The notes beneath the pieces are model-generated. The model was given only the letters and a program-made list of their open reading frames with translations, ran no database searches and was not told the DNA's origin. A stretch of 64,000 bases of DNA from Ophelia neglecta. Lineage: Eukaryota. This document shows, in pieces, positions 17,722 through 28,690 of this stretch (the stretch's first letter is position 1; every line of letters starts with the position of its first letter). Position numbers and translations under genes: made by a program. The stretch covers positions 82,088,001 to 82,152,000 of the forward strand of contig OZ260662.1 of NCBI GenBank assembly GCA_965285935.1, written 5' to 3'.

Positions 17722-19621
17722 TTTACAGGCGTTCTTTCAATATTCTGAAAAGATATGTTATGCCAGATGTCAACTTGCCATTTGTAAGACTTAGACTGTA
17801 TATTTGGCCAAAAAATAAACAACTCAGGGAAAAAGGGCAGGTATGGAGCATTTGGAGATAACTTGATGGAAGTTTAAAGGTTATTGGACAGAAGTAACAT
17901 ATCTTGCTTAAAGCTATATGAAAGCAAGTTTTGCGGCTAAATGGGTCAGGCTCAACAAATAAAATTGGCTGCCTCGCGACCACGAAAGTCTAGAGCTGAT
18001 GTTTCGTACTAAGGCATTGTTTTCGCAAGTTATTATGTTGATTTGATTATTTTTTCGATTATTGCACCTGAACCGTAAGGTTTCAGACTATAAGGAAACC
18101 TTTTCCCGAGTTTGTTTTTTAAGGGATTAGTGCACCTATAAACCCAGATATACCATATCTGCTATGAAATGCAGCATGTACTAAAACAAGTTTAACATAT
18201 CTATGGGGGAACTACAAACACATGCTGCATGTTATGTTTAACAAAACCCGGTCCATAAAGAACCCCGAGTACTTGCGACATTGATTCTTTTTACATTTGC
18301 TCCTGGATGGCTGCCTTGATTACAGGTGCGGATAGCCAAGGTTACAGGGCCCGATGCCCCTATCTCCTGGCCGTATATGATCCGTAAACATTTTTTTCAC
18401 TGTGACGCGCTTTTGACGATTCAGATTTGATTCAGAATCAGAAACATTTATTAGACCAAGATAGAGCAAGTACAATTGCAATATAGAAAAATAGGAAGAC
18501 ACAAAATAAGATTTATTATGAAACAAACAAAAATGCATATTTACAACAAGTAACGGTGTGTCCTCGCGGTCAGGGAGACCCCTATTAAGTCCTAGTTATA
18601 TGGAAATTGGATATTTCAACGCTAACACTAGGGTCATTCTTCTATACTAGAAGTAGTCACTTTGTAACTATTGGTCATGTCCTAAACCAAGTAAACACCA
18701 TGATTCAATTTACCATGCTGTGAAATTAATTAAAAATGTATATATGTATATATCTATACCTTGTTTTGTTGTAACGCAACATTATTAGTAAGGAGAAATA
18801 ACATGAACTGTCCATGGCCAGTAGCATATGGTTCAAAGTAGAATCTTCAATTCACCCGCCATTATTGTATGTAGGTGTGTGGTTGCAAATAATGTCACAT
18901 TGCCGGACTTGTAAGGTATTATGACGACCAAAATGTTTCACGTGGTGTGTCGATCATATAGTAAATGTCTGTATCATGTGATCTTGATTGAGACAATAAA
19001 GAATTATTATTATTATTATGCTAGCATGGGGGTCACCGCAGGAAATATATACAAAGGATCATAGCAGATAAAAACACGGCGGTGAAGGAGCATTGGGCAC
19101 ACTTCCACATAAAGCATTTACAAAATACATACAGACATATTCACAAACATATCTCACACCGTTCCATGGACCACCTTGACAAGGGTATAGGTAAGAGTAT
19201 TCCATGAATTATGGTTAAGTCGGAGCTGCATTACTTAGCACAAGTAGCAAGAAAAAAAGAAAAGTAAATAAAAGAAAAAATCCTATAGAAATAATTGTCA
19301 ACATAAAATAGTTATAGGCTAGAGAAATGTTACCATACATGCAAAAAACCTGGCTTACCTACGGCTCTCTTTGTTGACCGGGATGTAATGGCCTTACTCT
19401 TTATTTACCCCGATGCTACAATTCTTTTTAAAAGTAAACCACCACATCCGCTTCGATAGAGCGATCAAGCATCTTCAGGTGTCACTGAAAGCTTGCAAAT
19501 TTGCATATACCTTCAGGTTTTACGTTCAGCCCGACTTCAAAGAGAGGGGTGAAGGAAAGTTCAGGTGACGGGCCAATGACCATTTGACCTAGACTATTAA
19601 TAACATTTGTTTGAAATTCGG

Positions 19622-20192
19622 TGTAGCGGGGGCTATCACTGCCATCTATAACAACACTCTTTGACAGTAATAGATCTTTATTTCGGCGTTCACAGTCTCA
19701 TTAATCACGTACAATCCGTAAGCCACTAAAAATACGTACGATGCTTAAACGACGATCGTTGACCACGTAAAACTGAAAACAAACAAACCTCCATTACAAC
19801 TAGGCCACAGACATAAATTATGTTAATTATGCTGGACGAACACGTGCGTAGGTTTGACATTCTAATTACTGATTTTTATACATCAATAAGACAATAAAAT
19901 TGACGAAACTTATTTGTTTACTATCTATGCATGTTTACCTTCATTCCAGGGTTCACATTTAACAATTTTCAGCGGAATCATTCCTTTAGGAGCATAAAAC
20001 AGGATAGGTAAGTAGCCTAAGACTTGGCTGATCGAAAACCGGAAACAACTGAATCTAGATCTACCGGAAGCAAACACCACAACTAGGAAATACAGAAGCA
20101 CACACAGAGACGCCTAGGGAACTAGGCGTGCATTACCATAATAACCACAGGACTAATGGGGCAGTAGTATACGACCACTAGACGCACTTACA
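19622..20192 (-). repeat. 3' LTR of BEL/Pao element (571 bp)
   Basis: Direct repeat of 26548-27118, preceded on the minus strand by the PPT. Confidence 0.97.
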
Positions 20193-20202
20193 TGGCTCCT
20201 CT
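20193..20202 (-). other. Polypurine tract of the retrotransposon
   Basis: Minus-strand AGAGGAGCCA directly abutting the TG of the 3' LTR. Confidence 0.8.
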
Positions 20203-20394
20203 AAATTTTACCAAATTTACTAACTAAATAACAAATGGTCTCACCACTATACTATCGACAATTTTACAAACATTAATAATAACTTGCACAATAATAATAA
20301 TTTCGAGAAAGGAGAGGTTCCAGCACATCACTTTCAACACCAGTCTTTACCACTGGTTCCCTACATACAAAACAATGATACTTTCATAATACAT

Positions 20395-23300: not shown

Positions 23301-26300
23301 CTTTAGGATTGACGCTCACCTGCAAGAACATACCTTCTATATCACAAGAAAGGGCAACTACTTCCTTGCGAAATCGACACAAGACACCCACCAGATTATT
23401 GTTCATGTCAGGACCTTGTAGTAAGTGATGATTAAGAGTCTCGGACTGATACTCGGCACTGCAGTCAAATACTACTCTCAGTTTTGACTTCTTAGCGTGG
23501 ATCACACCATGATGGGGTAGATACCATATTCTCCCATTATCTAAGGTGTCCTGGCTTGGAGGCACCTTCTCTGCATAGCCTTTAGCTATCATGTCATTCA
23601 TAAAGGCAGTATATTCTGTCTTATACCTTTTATCACTTTTCATTTTAGCCTTAAGTCTTTTGAGTCTTTTCTCAGCCATAGGTCTGTTGTTTGGAAGCTT
23701 GAGGTTATTCTGCTTAAAGGGTAGAGGAATCTGAAAATGTCCATCGTCCCTTTGTATAATCCCATCAGAAACTAACTTGAGGAATCTTCGATCTTCGATG
23801 GACACTTTTTCTTCTGATTCTCTTTCATTAAATTCTCTCTCAAACATTCCTGTGACCTGTACCGGGCTGATTTCTCTGGCCTGCGTTCTAAAGGAAAAGT
23901 GACAACTTCTTTCCTCTATAGTGACTGCTCTACAAAATGACTTTGCGTTCTGTTTGACAGAATTATCCATCATACCAATGACACCCCAACCAAGATCTGT
24001 CTTGATTGCATATGGATCATCTTGCTGTCCAGGTACAATGTCTCTGGGCTTTAACACTCTAGCACAGTTGGTCCCTATCAGTAAGCCTATCTCAACATCT
24101 TTCTCATAAGGGTGTAGATTTTCTGCCACCTTCACCAAATGCGGCCATTGGCTAACCGTTTCAGGCCTAGGGATCTGACTGTGGCTAGCAGGGATATCAT
24201 TTCTGGAGTAGGTAGGCGGTAAAGTGATATTTGTACCATTGTCTAAATCTCTGATCACCAGACCGCTCACTTTTTTACACCGAACGATTTCTTCACCTAG
24301 CATAGTAGACAATTTAAGTTCAATCTTGGGCCCTTCAGCACCTATCTTAGACAAAGTTGATTCTGCTATGAAACAGGAATTTGACTGTGGGTCCAGGAGG
24401 GCGTATACCAACACTTGTCCATCTGGTTTACTTTCATGACTTAGGTACACTGGCACAATCAGGGAATGAAAGCAGTCCTGTACTGGTTGATTGCCATCAT
24501 AGGCTTCAGTTCTGTGTGACACAACCTCATGCTTTCGCTCTTTCTTAGGGGCATTAACCTCATTGTCTCTTACTGGGCCTTTACCTACTAGGGCCCTCTC
24601 TTGTGGGACATAGGAATCATCATGCAATGGAGTCGGATGACAACCTTTACATTTCTCACACGACTGTTTGCTTCTACAGTCCCTTTTTAGATGTCCCCAC
24701 CGCAGGCAACCCATACATAATCCTTTAGATCTCACTAGTGCCATTCTTTCTCGCAGGTTGATTTTTAGAAAGTTCGGGCATACCTCTAATTTGTGGTGGG
24801 CTTTGCAGAGGGTACAAGACAACACCCTGGGGGTATTCTGGGCAGATTGGGTACTGGTAGCATTACAATTGGCAATTTCGATATTACTATCAGGGACCTC
24901 AGTGTGGCTTGCAAAGCTACGGGCGTTTGTTTGCCCGCCTCCCATCCTACGTGGTTGTTCTTTTACAAACTCTTGGTGTGATTTAATTGAGGCGGGGCCA
25001 CAGGCTATTCTTGCTTCCTTCTTTAGAAATTCGCAAAATTTAGCAAAATTTGGATAACAACAATTTTCATAACTATGCAAACAATCATCAACAATTCTGC
25101 CCCATCTGTCACATACATATTTTGGCAATTTGCTTAACAAATTCTGGTTTTCATGCACATCATTTAATACATTGAGATAATCAATAGAATTCATAGCACT
25201 AAGACAATTACATAAAAAATCTGAAAATTTTCTCAAACTCCTCCCATCATTTGGTTTGATCACAGGCCACTTCATTAACTGTGATCTATAGGCTTCAGAT
25301 ATAATGAAGGCGTTTCCGTATCTTTCATCTAAAATTCTACGGGCGTCCATGTAGGCTGAATCATCGTTTAATGTCACAAGACCTTGGATGGCCTCCCTGG
25401 CCTCCCCTGCCGTATATTTCTGGAGATAATACAGTCTTTTGGAAGGGGTCGAAACGTTGTCCTCGATTAAACTTTCAAACGACTTGATCCACAGTGGGTA
25501 TTTGAGAATGTCTCCCTTGAATACTTCTGGCTCTAGCTGTGGTAAGTTGTCCTGGCGATTTGCCAGCAAGTCCGCAAGCCGGGACAAGTCATTCGGAGAG
25601 CAGCTACGTTCTGTAAGAGGGTGGGTAGCTTGATTTACCTCTGTCATGAGAGGTCTAGATGTTGGCAATGTCTGTTGTGCTACAAAGGGGGTAGAGGTGA
25701 ACACAGGAGCAGTAATACCTGCAGAATAATTCATTGTGGGATTAAATGTTACTGTAGGAGATGATGTAGGGGCTTCAGGCGCTAAATTTTGTGGCTTACC
25801 GCTAGACATATTGGAGCCGCGTTCATATTTCTCGAATACTTGCGCCTTTGCTTCGCTAACTGCCATTTCGGTATGCAGATGAAATTCCTCTTCCAACCTG
25901 TTAAGTTCGTATTTTGAGAGCTGTGCCAAATCGTCTAATTGCTGCTGTTGCAGTCTTAACTCCTCAGTTTTGGCCCTCTGCTCCATCTCGATCTGCTTTC
26001 GATGTCTATCAATGTGATACTGCTCATTCAGAGCCGCCTTTCTGGCAGATAATTCTGCAATCTTCTGCTCCTCTTGTAATCGCAAGAGACTTACGTTAGA
26101 ACGAACGCTGGAGCGTGAAAGGTGTGACTTTATGTTGGACGCACTGTCCTTTGGGCTCAGAGTATCCAAGGACATGGGGTTTTTTGTCAGAAAGTCCTCT
26201 ACACTTGCCTTAAATGTTCTCAATATTGTAGACTGTCTTTCATATTGTTTTTCATGCTTAACTTTGTCATCACTGGGAAGATCTAGTAAAATGTCCTCTT

Positions 26301-26571
26301 CTGTTTGTAGGTATTGTCCATAATCTGTGATAAAAGCTCTGTAATGTTCATGAACTGCATGTGGTCTACAGGCCTTTATTTCCATGTCAACATCACTCAT
26401 GTCCTTACATAACTTGTCAAAAATGGTCTTCAATTGCCTTTCCTGGTCATCCTTCATAATATTCTGTACATATTGGGCCATTTTTGGTGTCACTTTAATT
26501 GTTCTTCCACTTCTGGTGATCAATGCTTTATCTGGGTGAAGTTTTACTGTAGCGGGGGCTATCACTGCCAT
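20395..26571 (-). CDS. BEL/Pao gag-pol polyprotein (2058 aa): gag, zinc knuckles, aspartic protease, RT, RNase H, integrase
   Basis: Gag core PEVFKGDILKYPLW...RLYYLQKYTAGEAREAI. Three Cys/His knuckles (CTLCKAHHKLEVC, CMGCLRWGHLKRDC, CEKCKGCHPTPLH). Protease ALLDPQS. RT WYLPHH..LRVVFDCS..FGATSSP..FYVDD. RNase H HHFSDAS..PRLELAAA. Integrase HHCC finger plus AVDLFGP/RSDRGTNF/GVWERQI, and Pao C-terminal RWRRVQYLADQFWSRW...RPVHKL. Confidence 0.97.
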   Translation of the reverse strand: MAVIAPATVKLHPDKALITRSGRTIKVTPKMAQYVQNIMKDDQERQLKTIFDKLCKDMSDVDMEIKACRPHAVHEHYRAFITDYGQYLQTEEDILLDLPSDDKVKHEKQYERQSTILRTFKASVEDFLTKNPMSLDTLSPKDSASNIKSHLSRSSVRSNVSLLRLQEEQKIAELSARKAALNEQYHIDRHRKQIEMEQRAKTEELRLQQQQLDDLAQLSKYELNRLEEEFHLHTEMAVSEAKAQVFEKYERGSNMSSGKPQNLAPEAPTSSPTVTFNPTMNYSAGITAPVFTSTPFVAQQTLPTSRPLMTEVNQATHPLTERSCSPNDLSRLADLLANRQDNLPQLEPEVFKGDILKYPLWIKSFESLIEDNVSTPSKRLYYLQKYTAGEAREAIQGLVTLNDDSAYMDARRILDERYGNAFIISEAYRSQLMKWPVIKPNDGRSLRKFSDFLCNCLSAMNSIDYLNVLNDVHENQNLLSKLPKYVCDRWGRIVDDCLHSYENCCYPNFAKFCEFLKKEARIACGPASIKSHQEFVKEQPRRMGGGQTNARSFASHTEVPDSNIEIANCNATSTQSAQNTPRVLSCTLCKAHHKLEVCPNFLKINLRERMALVRSKGLCMGCLRWGHLKRDCRSKQSCEKCKGCHPTPLHDDSYVPQERALVGKGPVRDNEVNAPKKERKHEVVSHRTEAYDGNQPVQDCFHSLIVPVYLSHESKPDGQVLVYALLDPQSNSCFIAESTLSKIGAEGPKIELKLSTMLGEEIVRCKKVSGLVIRDLDNGTNITLPPTYSRNDIPASHSQIPRPETVSQWPHLVKVAENLHPYEKDVEIGLLIGTNCARVLKPRDIVPGQQDDPYAIKTDLGWGVIGMMDNSVKQNAKSFCRAVTIEERSCHFSFRTQAREISPVQVTGMFEREFNERESEEKVSIEDRRFLKLVSDGIIQRDDGHFQIPLPFKQNNLKLPNNRPMAEKRLKRLKAKMKSDKRYKTEYTAFMNDMIAKGYAEKVPPSQDTLDNGRIWYLPHHGVIHAKKSKLRVVFDCSAEYQSETLNHHLLQGPDMNNNLVGVLCRFRKEVVALSCDIEGMFLQVSVNPKDRDFLRLLWWENDDFDMEPIPYRMTVHPFGATSSPACASFALKRTADTYEKAYGKAAADFLRRDFYVDDGLKSVATTSEALQLIKSSTDMCKEGGFNLHKYVCNNKDVLSAIPNECRAKDVQSLDLLRDKLPVERTLGIQWCVESDTFQFVVVLKDQPFTRRGILSSVSSIYDPMGLVSPFLLKGKKILQELCRDGANWDDPIPDEMRMRWDKWRTELKQLSDLKIRRCYREEKNGTPEDIQLHHFSDASTEGYGQCSYLRLTDSEGNVSCSLVMSKSRVAPSKPVTMPRLELAAAVVSVRIGRFLERELDYENISHFYWTDSMVVLGYIANEARRFHIYVANRVQTIRNSTTPDQWGYVDTKVNPADLASRGIGAEELKTSSLWWKGPDFLSANMLPPTEITTPELVPEDPEVRKVTTFFTKAKSTNLADILTRLERFSSWHSVRRAIAVCMRFKKKLLDRSVKRPKEIDHSEMSRIEMMKTYAPVNVEEMKQAEDVIIKMVQGQAFSKERDIMRKIKSHEEIDNTRKRKPSMKESGSLYRLDPFLDQHDLVRVGGRIKRANMPKEVTNPVILPRHSHITMLVILHYHKQCGHSGRGMTLNNIRAAGYWIIAGTSAVTSHIWHCVMCRKLRGANLGQKMADLPNDRLDPSPPFSYSAVDLFGPFLVKEGRRELKRYGTLFTCLVSRAVHIEIAHSLSTDSFLNAYRRFVGRRGPIRQLRSDRGTNFVGAKGELQHALDEMDHNKIRQEMLKEQCDWVSFAMNFPHSSHKGGVWERQIRSVRNALSAILMEHGSQLNDELLATFMVEAEAIVNSRPLTFPDMGSPDASEPISPSQLLTLKTKVVLPPPGVFQREDLYCRRRWRRVQYLADQFWSRWKVEFLPTLQPRQKWTKSQPNIAKDDIVLMIDEQVPRCSWPLGRVLDTFPGNDGLVRKVRLAVRQSTYERPVHKLVLLIRRGDPVEEPPTDVK
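26532..26547 (-). other. Non-canonical primer-binding-site position (GTAAAACTTCACCCAG; no TGG)
   Basis: The sequence immediately 3' of the 5' LTR lacks the TGG complementary to tRNA CCA. It is complementary to the predicted spliced LTR junction CTGGAATGAAG|TTTTAC. Confidence 0.65.
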
Positions 26572-27118
26572 CTATAACAACACTCTTTGACAGTAATAGA
26601 TCTTTATTTCGGCGTTCACAGTCTCATTAATCACGTACAATCCGTAAGCCACTAAAAATACGTACGATGCTTAAACGACGATCGTTGACCACGTAAAACT
26701 GAAAACAAACAAACCTCCATTACAACTAGGCCACAGACATAAATTATGTTAATTATGCTGGACGAACACGTGCGTAGGTTTGACATTCTAATTACTGATT
26801 TTTATACATCAATAAGACAATAAAATTGACGAAACTTATTTGTTTACTATCTATGCATGTTTACCTTCATTCCAGGGTTCACATTTAACAATTTTCAGCG
26901 GAATCATTCCTTTAGGAGCATAAAACAGGATAGGTAAGTAGCCTAAGACTTGGCTGATCGAAAACCGGAAACAACTGAATCTAGATCTACCGGAAGCAAA
27001 CACCACAACTAGGAAATACAGAAGCACACACAGAGACGCCTAGGGAACTAGGCGTGCATTACCATAATAACCACAGGACTAATGGGGCAGTAGTATACGA
27101 CCACTAGACGCACTTACA
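26548..27118 (-). repeat. 5' LTR of BEL/Pao element (571 bp)
   Basis: Direct repeat of 19622-20192. On the minus strand it starts TGTAAG and ends GCTACA. AATAAA at 26608-26603. Confidence 0.97.
26699..26864 (-). other. Putative 166-nt GT-AG intron within the LTR (copy in 3' LTR at 19773-19938)
   Basis: Donor AAG|GTAAAC at 26864, branch-like ATTAAC about 50 nt upstream of the acceptor, acceptor GTTTGTTTGTTTTCAG| ending at 26699, AT-rich interior. Confidence 0.55.
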
Positions 27119-28273
27119 TTCGGAAACGCCGTTGTTCGTGGCAGAGAAACTGTCGGTCTGTACTTGTCTGGCTGATTGCTTGCTTAAAATAAAATTTTAT
27201 CTGACTGAAACACATGACTGATATTTTGATAAGCTAGATAATTTCGCCAGCTCGGATCTGTTGATACAGGTTGAATCCCGGAATAGTTAAAACCAAAAAG
27301 AACTCGAGCTCATTGAATACTAATCGCCGGGAAAACTGTCTGGCTGCCGCGAGACAGGTGCACGACGCAACAATTAAGGTTTACAAGTAAATCCTCGCAA
27401 GGCGCATCGACAAGGGGACAACCATCTCGGTAGGGTGTTGCGACCGCCAGATAAGGTTTTGTCTCATTTGGGAAAAAGCCTGGAAACAAACCAAATAGAG
27501 TGAAGTCGGTAGGTGTGTTGCCATTTGTTAAAAACAACTAAATTTGTTATCCAAACACATTACATTCTGACTTAAAGAGGTTTCGGTGTCCTATTCGGCA
27601 CGTTTAACAAATGAATCTGCTTCCGTGTGAAATAATCCGGCCAAGCACCTGTTGAAGTGAATTTCTCTATATATGAGAATAATCCGTGACGTTTGGCAAT
27701 ATTAACTAACTGAGGTAGATACCCTCTGCGCGTGCCGCAGCCCCATATTACAGTCATTATTTGTAGACAAAACAGTCGCAAACTAAGATTATATAGTGGC
27801 GAACGTACAATTAGTTTTCAAATATGCCATGATGCCGTATACAATGTTGAAGGCAGTTAGGGTGTCCAATTGACAGGCATAAGCTACTGCACCTCTCGAG
27901 TTGCAAACACGATCGCCTCAGTCAGTCCGATGGAATACAGAAGATAATCACCACCTTTCTGATATGCATTTTGAATATCTATGGGGAATTGAATATTATT
28001 TGCATGTAGGTGAACGATCCATCGGTTCAGAACAATCTTTCGAACAACTTATATTAGATTACATGCAACTTGATCAGGAATAATAGTGTTACCGAATAGG
28101 TAAGAAATTCTCAGGAACCACCAGCAGGCTCACAACCACAAAATGAAGCAGAACGATAGGACTAATGTATAAAAATTATAATTGTCAATATGAAATAGTT
28201 ATGGAGACATTAAACCTAACTTTGCATTATAATCTATGTAAATGTATGATCACCATGTGTGCGAAAAATCTGC

Positions 28274-28690
28274 CTTACCTCCTGATCTCTTCGTCGACAC
28301 CGATTTGGAGTAGCGTGCCATCTAGGACTTTATATATATGTACCCCATTGCTATGCACAACGCTTTTTTCAAAGTAAATTGTCACATCCGCTTCCATAGA
28401 ACGATCAAGCATCTTCAGCGGACACTTAAAGCTTGTTTATCAGCATGAATAATTCATGATTATATTAACTGTAAGATTCTGTCACGAACTTACATAAGTC
28501 AGCCAGTATTATATTGTATCAATTATAAGTGTTAAATGTGGAATAGATACTTTGAGGTTAATTTTTTTCATTCAGCCCGACTTTCAGGAGAGCTCAGGTG
28601 ACGCCCAATGGCCATTTTATTTAAATCGTTAATAACATTCATTTGAAATTCGGAAACGTCGTCGTTCGTGGCACAGTTACTATAGGTCTG
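28274..28690 (-). repeat. Diverged duplicate of the block interrupted by the retrotransposon (19354-19621 + 27124-27160); candidate promoter and non-coding first exon
   Basis: Shared strings CACATCCGCTTC.ATAGA.CGATCAAGCATCTTCAG, TTCAGCCCGACTT and TTGAAATTCGGAAACG.CGT.GTTCGTGGCA. Minus-strand TATATAAA (28336-28329) and donor AG|GTAAG (28278; counterpart at 19358). Confidence 0.75.

Follow-up and report, generated by a model that had tools for sequence, protein, structure and literature searches.

Retrotransposons with long terminal repeats (LTRs) are, to our knowledge, primed for reverse transcription in only two established ways, by host tRNAs or by the unspliced self-primer of the Tf1 group. 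Self-primed reverse transcription was reportedly described by Levin and co-workers in Tf1/Tf2, which belong to the Tf1/sushi group of Ty3/gypsy elements, and the primer of Tf1 is the unspliced first 11 nucleotides (nt) of the mRNA. Here, a full-length BEL/Pao LTR retrotransposon is described on the minus strand of a 64,000-nt stretch of the genome of Ophelia neglecta (contig OZ260662.1, positions 82,088,001 to 82,152,000; the whole stretch is called the window, and positions are counted within it). In the region around 26532-26875, the complement of the primer site is split over two exons and becomes contiguous after intron removal. A first reading of the sequence (the original prediction) had suggested that such an element assembles its own primer by splicing within its LTR. 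Splice-made self-priming of this BEL/Pao element is considered probable here; self-priming as such is known from the Tf1/sushi group, and the splice-assembled primer is the new part.

The likeness to Tf1 extends to several features. In both cases the primer site adjoins the 5' LTR and finds its complement in the leader of the element itself rather than in a tRNA, the predicted pairing closes a large R-U5 domain, and generation of a 3'-OH requires a cut within an RNA duplex. Unlike Tf1, the window element belongs to BEL/Pao and not to the Tf1/sushi group of Ty3/gypsy, and it has an extra distal helix beyond an internal loop. Self-primed reverse transcription of the Tf1/sushi group is mentioned in two papers (PMC7175516, PMC3601003), and full-text literature searches returned nothing on BEL/Pao self-priming, splicing-linked self-priming, splice-made primers or LTR introns.

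According to the International Committee on Taxonomy of Viruses (ICTV), the Belpaoviridae carry an 18-nt site to which tRNA-Arg or tRNA-Gly can pair with its 3' end, and a host tRNA primes their replication (PMC8742986); the main BEL/Pao survey nowhere discusses primer sites (PMC3118150). The window element shares with canonical Belpaoviridae (Semotivirus) a polyprotein with Peptidase_A17, DUF1759 and DUF5641, TG...CA LTRs, a 5-bp duplication and a polypurine tract, but no such 18-nt site is present. For the bases that follow the 5' LTR, no pairing with a host tRNA 3' end, as in the ICTV description, was found at the near-match loci checked, and there is no TGG at or near the LTR edge.

Sequences in U3 that are complementary to the primer-site region, and that aid a tRNA primer, are known from Ty1 (CYC5/CYC3) and from the bipartite 5'-3' site of Ty3. 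These contacts involve no splice junction, whereas in the window element the upstream complementary block ends at a donor GT and continues into the bases that follow the acceptor. Spliceosomal signals inside terminal repeats or leaders are likewise shared with foamy virus and human T-lymphotropic virus, which have donors in R, with Ogre, which has an intron, and with intron-retaining Penelope-like elements. We know of no report that splicing in any of these elements creates a primer for reverse transcription.

In the window element, exon 1 ends AAG at 26865 and is followed by GTAAAC from 26864, while exon 2 begins TTTTAC at 26698. A single 8-mer of the unspliced LTR, AGTTTTAC (26700), is complementary to the primer site, whereas the modelled junction, CTGGAATGAAG joined to TTTTAC, would pair with the site over 11 contiguous base pairs (bp) up to the LTR boundary, and over four more (CTGG/CCAG) beyond a small internal loop. 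The original prediction had given these same two extents of pairing, 8 nt for unspliced RNA and 11 plus 4 bp for the junction, and had read the site as GTAAAACTTCACCCAG with no TGG; all three points were reproduced. Taken singly, the match is weak and only marginally above that of shuffled sequences, and it stands far above chance only because related families show the same pairing.

Donor-exon/primer-site covariation in related BEL/Pao families was a check put forward with the original prediction, and such covariation is present and extensive. The comparison covered 17 lineages, namely 11 families collected from this genome, with gag 27-47% identical, and six foreign elements from public contigs, including those of a barnacle (L111; Amphibalanus amphitrite, GCA_019059575.1 JAHNUP010000071.1:972150-982912), a pipefish (L113; Corythoichthys intestinalis, GCA_030265065.1 CM059159.1:12282695-12292971) and a limpet (L112); L109 and L101 yielded neither an LTR nor a primer site that could be interpreted. 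All lineages compared have a YAG acceptor 47-151 nt before the LTR ends, and the 6-8 nt after this acceptor are in every case exactly complementary to the opening bases of the primer site, which starts directly after the LTR, but 3 or 6 nt later in two families. Exon 2 and site bases 1-8 covary through nine states, written here as exon 2/site: TTTTAC/GTAAAA, TTTCAC/GTGAAA, TCTTAC/GTAAGA, TTTTTAC/GTAAAAA, TTCTTAC/GTAAGAA, CTTTTAC/GTAAAAG, CTTTTTAC/GTAAAAAG, ACTGTAC/GTACAGT and ACTGAAC/GTTCAGT. On the other side of the junction, exon 1 ends in GAAG, AGAG, AGTG, AAAG, ACGAA or GCCG, and the site bases from position 7 read, in the same order, CTTC, CTCT, CACT, CTTT, TTCGT or CGGC.

To avoid a choice of donor by eye, every LTR position upstream of the acceptor was tried as the end of exon 1. 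In 12 of the 17 lineages, a GT comes directly after the position with the longest unbroken junction match; GT follows about 9% of positions, and the resulting binomial P of ~1e-9 overstates independence because some families are related, and is indicative only. When positions are ranked by duplex energy, the best one falls at a GT in seven of the nine families scanned. The donors so found (GTAAAC, GTAATC, GTATGT, GTTAGT, GTAAAA, GTACGT and similar) give introns of 118-359 nt across the lineages. Contiguous complementarity in spliced as against unspliced RNA is 16 against 7 nt in the barnacle, 14 against 8 in family 9, 14 against 9 in L107, 13 against 9 in L108, 11 against 7 in the pipefish and 10-12 against 7 in family 5, and unspliced RNA cannot explain the match in the barnacle, family 9, L107, family 5 or the pipefish. 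A distal helix of 4-6 bp past a small internal loop is present in most families, and it covaries too. In minimum-energy folds of modelled spliced leaders, the junction is predicted to pair with the site and to close the R-U5 domain in seven of seven families. For families 1 and 2, the predicted helix continues past the LTR edge, with the GU of exon 2 pairing with the AC of the terminus, such that a cut at the end of the primer would fall inside the duplex. As possible markers of the transcription start, motifs resembling a TATA box or an initiator upstream of exon 1 were set aside: families 3, 6 and 9 have a suggestive distance of ~26 nt between a TATA-like box and TCA, but the arrangement is inconsistent in other families.

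The comparison of family 1, that of the window element, with family 2 isolates the conserved parts. Gag is merely 42% identical between the two families, and their LTRs align in three islands only: the donor-1 block TGGAATGAAGGTAA, the acceptor block TTTCAGTTTTACGT, and GCTACAGTAAAACTTCACCCA, which comprises the LTR end and the primer site. Fifteen of the 16 nt of the primer site are common to both families, and coding cannot account for this conservation, as the family-2 site is not part of the gag frame. Site base 16 changes from G in family 1 to C in family 2, and its partner base, immediately 5' of TGGAATGAAG, changes from C to G.

The LTR intron itself is real, and both of its donors are recorded as DNA copies of spliced RNA. 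The original prediction had picked out a GT-AG intron candidate (26864...26699), and the GT...AG ends, the donor context and a pyrimidine-rich tract before the YAG are all present. In addition, precise losses are found in two DNA copies. The first, a family-1 copy (G000:C1:40884275-40894855) with its own target-site duplication, TTAGT, lacks exactly 26847-26699 in both LTRs; the missing piece begins GTAAAC and finishes TTTTCAG, and the alignment allows no shift. The exactness of this loss indicates that the predicted acceptor was used in vivo. The donor used for this copy is donor 2, with the boundary between 26848 and 26847, and not donor 1 of the original prediction. The second, a family-2 copy (C7:24199239-24206283; L104, L105), lacks in its 5' LTR exactly the 247-nt interval that runs from a donor-1-type site (TGGAATGAAG followed by GTAATC) to the acceptor (TTTCAG followed by TTTTAC), and retains this interval in its 3' LTR. 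Donor 1 is accordingly the donor used in family 2, and is conserved between families 1 and 2. Intron-less copies were sought with unspliced LTR references only. The contigs of runs X1-X3, which are DNA-like, contain no join across the intron. The spliced family-2 LTR was also considered as the central LTR of two elements in tandem, and this reading was rejected: the shared upstream sequence belongs to a longer LTR (L039 929-1500), and no second pol lies upstream. A 62-66-nt indel in the family-3 LTRs is not an intron.

Two further observations concern family-1 and family-1-like sequences. The intron-less C1 copy carries a 3.35-kb insertion (G000:C1:40884801-40888152) ~130 nt after the LTR. The end of this insertion is a 229-nt sequence found at 99-100% identity at at least 13 other loci, among them a position just upstream of a family-9 LTR (L103), and the insertion has the look of a further mobile element of very recent origin. 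Two diverged family-1-like LTRs of 82% identity are oppositely oriented and 113 kb apart at G000:C12:59171441-59171968 (L013) and 59285104-59285635 (L014). The donor-1 block is altered in both, the sequence downstream is non-complementary and the same in the two, and they may represent a segmental duplication or a derivative family.

The mechanism proposed would begin with a transcript that starts upstream of exon 1 (26875) and is spliced in its 5' LTR copy; this RNA, or a second spliced RNA, would supply the junction. In the spliced LTR, the last 4-9 nt of exon 1 would be joined to the first 6-8 nt of exon 2, and the joined sequence would pair with the site from the 3' edge of the LTR, forming a helix of 10-16 bp across the junction and usually a distal helix of 4-6 bp. 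By analogy with Tf1, the spliced leader may fold back onto the site, or the spliced RNA may anneal to it in trans. A cut after nucleotide 6 of exon 2 (after 26693), probably by the RNase H of the element, would leave a new 3'-OH to prime minus-strand DNA, and the strong-stop DNA would then transfer to the 3' R. Exon 1 and the intron, together with U3, would be copied from the unspliced 3' LTR after this first strand transfer, which is why the intron would persist. The site would be partly re-copied from the primer in each cycle, and this fits a proximal helix that is perfect and an internal loop that lasts.

Two other sources of a primer 3' end were tried and rejected. The original prediction had raised spliceosomal first-step cleavage, at TTTTAC before GT, as an alternative to RNase H. 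This proposal is not supported, as four lineages (families 7, 10 and 11 and limpet L112) have no GU behind the cleavage point, and the GT found at this position elsewhere is explained by base pairing with the AC of the LTR terminus, as the folds of families 1 and 2 predict. In the case of free exon 1, a splicing intermediate, extension would place GTAAAA in U5, and the 3' LTR ends ...GCTACA.

The site that follows the LTR is most likely a self-priming site, since its complementarity starts at the start point of the minus strand, it covaries with the LTR of the element itself, and no tRNA counterpart was found. Moreover, the complementarity is contiguous only when the RNA is spliced, and a donor marks the end of its upstream half, so that splicing is the simplest way to make the primer sequence. 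Covariation and the intron losses thus favour the splice-assembled primer of the original prediction; the use of another donor in the intron-less family-1 copy is a caveat, and the side suggestion that did not stand is spliceosomal cleavage.

Several points weigh against a spliced primer. The sole intron-less copy of family 1 used donor 2, and the resulting junction, GATA joined to TTTTAC, can pair with the site over 6 nt only. With the window element taken by itself, the best junction at a GT donor does better than ~96% of shuffled distal sites (p about 0.04). Five of the 17 lineages (families 4, 7, 8 and 11 and limpet L112) have no unambiguous GT donor by contiguity, even though the best junction of family 8 by duplex energy ends at a GT donor and the limpet element has an 8-nt exon-2 match with an ambiguous donor. 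The spliced 5' LTR and unspliced 3' LTR of the family-2 copy are not expected from standard reverse transcription, which makes the two LTRs alike, and such discordance therefore needs recombination, an intermolecular second transfer or cDNA conversion. The model also requires one RNA to be spliced in its 5' LTR copy and to stay unspliced in its 3' copy. Finally, the acceptor CAG followed by TT is initiator-like, so that an unspliced self-primer of 7-9 nt is possible in most families.

This last point leads to plain self-priming of the Tf1 type without splicing, in which the A within the acceptor CAG (26700) would be the first base of the transcript and the first 7-9 nt, AGUUUUAC, would pair with the site and prime. 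The upstream block (the partner of site bases 7-16) would then lie in U3, be found in the RNA at its 3' end only, and make a long-range 5'-3' contact like that of Ty1 CYC5/CYC3 or Ty3, with any splicing in the 3' LTR a mere by-product. The position of the 8-nt match at an initiator-like TCAGTT, ~90 nt upstream of AATAAA, agrees with such a start, as do AT-rich, TATA-like stretches within the intron, and the covariation of exon 2 with the site is predicted likewise. However, an unspliced primer leaves unexplained that the distal block ends at GT in 12 of the 17 lineages and is contiguous with exon 2. Furthermore, its match is only 7 nt in the barnacle, the pipefish and family 5, and CAG is preceded by T, G or A and by a T-rich tract, as at acceptors. 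On this evidence, priming by the unspliced leader is judged unlikely.

A second alternative grants the pairing of junction and site but gives it a role other than priming, such as masking or exposure of the site, marking of spliced as against unspliced RNA for translation or packaging, or dimerisation, with some host RNA acting as primer. It is true that covariation proves pairing and not priming. Nevertheless, in most lineages the base directly behind the LTR is already the first complementary one, and in retroelements it is the 3' end of the primer that sets this point; in addition, no host tRNA candidate was found, and the site changes with the LTR of each family, which is incompatible with a host primer. 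A purely non-priming role is, in consequence, rather improbable.

The search for a host primer was made at several levels. In a whole-genome pattern search with the 16-mer of the site at up to 2 mismatches, near matches were fewer than for the reversed control pattern, and ARAGORN found no tRNA at any of the 23 near-match loci checked (1-2 mismatches). No tRNA match to the site was found with ARAGORN on the window or in an Rfam tRNA scan in which 63 of 44,574 candidates, mostly in tandem arrays, were scored. An Rfam scan of 26300-27250 gave nothing relevant. An equally good or better match to a host tRNA fragment, which the original prediction had named as a point that would count against it, thus did not emerge from the pattern search or the tRNA scans. 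The 44,574 tRNA-like candidates in the genome suggest tRNA-derived repeats, and tandem arrays of identical tRNA genes with a spacing of ~0.9-1.5 kb were seen at G000:C2:102.98-103.02 Mb, 119.65-119.69 Mb and 21.32 Mb. Priming by a host tRNA fragment or other host RNA, with the junction complementarity a coincidence, has in its favour that 63 of the 44,574 candidates in this 762-Mb genome were scored, but it is close to refuted and highly improbable, given an exact 16-mer confined to copies of the element, near matches below the control, 23 loci without a tRNA, and covariation statistics that exclude coincidence.

Beyond the primer region, the anatomy of the element (Table 1) is that of a full-length BEL/Pao retrotransposon. 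The single open reading frame (ORF) has matches to Peptidase_A17 (E = 3e-49), DUF1759 (E = 3e-10) and DUF5641 (E = 3e-30), and the combination of the three in one ORF identifies the element as BEL/Pao. The 5' LTR ends ...CGCTACA. The first ATG of the ORF (26571) lies within U5, and the primer site is consequently inside the reading frame; translation of 26571-26532 on the minus strand gives MAVIAPATVKLHPDKALITRSGR... across the site. A motif after the site, ALITRSGR..I..T..MA..V, is kept at the protein level in other families, and in these the ATG comes only after the site. Given the ATG in U5, the in-frame site and the conservation of this motif at the protein level, gag of the window family probably starts within the LTR, as in Ty1. 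The sequence AGTGGAAGAACA, conserved downstream of the primer site, was ruled out as a second primer site, as it is coding (the SGRT motif of gag).

Elements built in this way are young. In the window copy the LTRs are identical and the ORF is open, and an empty-site allele is present in the reads: in contigs of runs X1-X3, the only public runs with this sequence, the left flank (before 19622) is joined to the right flank (after 27118) with a single TTCGG. The material sequenced is hence polymorphic for the insertion, which is recent. Seven copies share the 5' end of the window element, and ~20 LTRs of family 1 are present in the 762-Mb assembly. An 82-nt direct repeat of 80% identity (19425-19506 and 28365-28446) flanks the element outside its LTRs.

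Table 1. Features of the BEL/Pao element and of its candidate splice-made primer, in window positions
Feature	Position	Strand	Remarks
Primer binding site GTAAAACTTCACCCAG, adjoining the LTR, no TGG	26532..26547 (26547->26532)	-	Exact 16-mer in the genome only at 7 element 5' ends
Putative exon 1 end CTGGAATGAAG, complementary to primer-site bases 7-11 and 13-16	26865..26875	-	Shared island TGGAATGAAGGTAA
First 6 nt of exon 2, TTTTAC, complementary to site bases 1-6	26693..26698 (26698->26693)	-	Covary with the site across families
Donor 1, GTAAAC (donor of the original prediction)	26859..26864	-	Kept in family 2, where a DNA copy lacks the donor-1-to-acceptor intron
Donor 2, GTAAAC, 17 nt downstream of donor 1	26842..26847	-	C1 copy lacks exactly 26847-26699
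LTR intron, 166 nt (donor 1) or 149 nt (donor 2)	26699..26864	-	GT-AG ends, T-rich tract, precise losses
Acceptor GGTTTGTTTGTTTTCAG	26699..26715	-	Used in the intron-less C1 copy; island TTTCAGTTTTACGT kept in family 2
5' LTR, TGTAAG...GCTACA, 571 bp	26548..27118 (27118->26548)	-	100% identical to 19622-20192
3' LTR, 571 bp	19622..20192 (20192->19622)	-	Identical to the 5' LTR
Target-site duplication TTCGG, 5 bp	27119..27123	.	Second copy at 19617-19621
AATAAA polyadenylation signal in R	26603..26608	-	From sequence; other families have a signal at the same relative position
Polypurine tract region TTTAGAGGAGCCA	20193..20205	-	Same motif before the LTR in L106, L108 and L110
Single gag-pol ORF, 2058 amino acids	20395..26571 (26571->20395)	-	Peptidase_A17, DUF1759, DUF5641

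Returning to splice-made self-priming, it is judged somewhat more likely than not that a BEL/Pao clade with hosts from crustaceans to teleost fish has abandoned tRNA priming and builds its primer by splicing a mini-exon of the LTR to the start of R. If so, a primer that exists only after splicing would represent a third solution to the priming problem of LTR elements, and replication would depend on the spliceosome of the host. The primer site would be rewritten in every cycle from the exon-exon junction of the element itself. Such an arrangement would also pose a problem of control, as the 3' LTR copy, which is the one passed on, must keep the same intron. In addition, it would account for the failure of tRNA-based annotation to find primer sites in many BEL/Pao elements. 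Apparently widespread and associated with copies that were active recently, the design is thus relevant to the annotation of animal genomes. In several species, including two with public genomes, single-base definition has been reached for the junction, the proposed cleavage point and the positions that covary.

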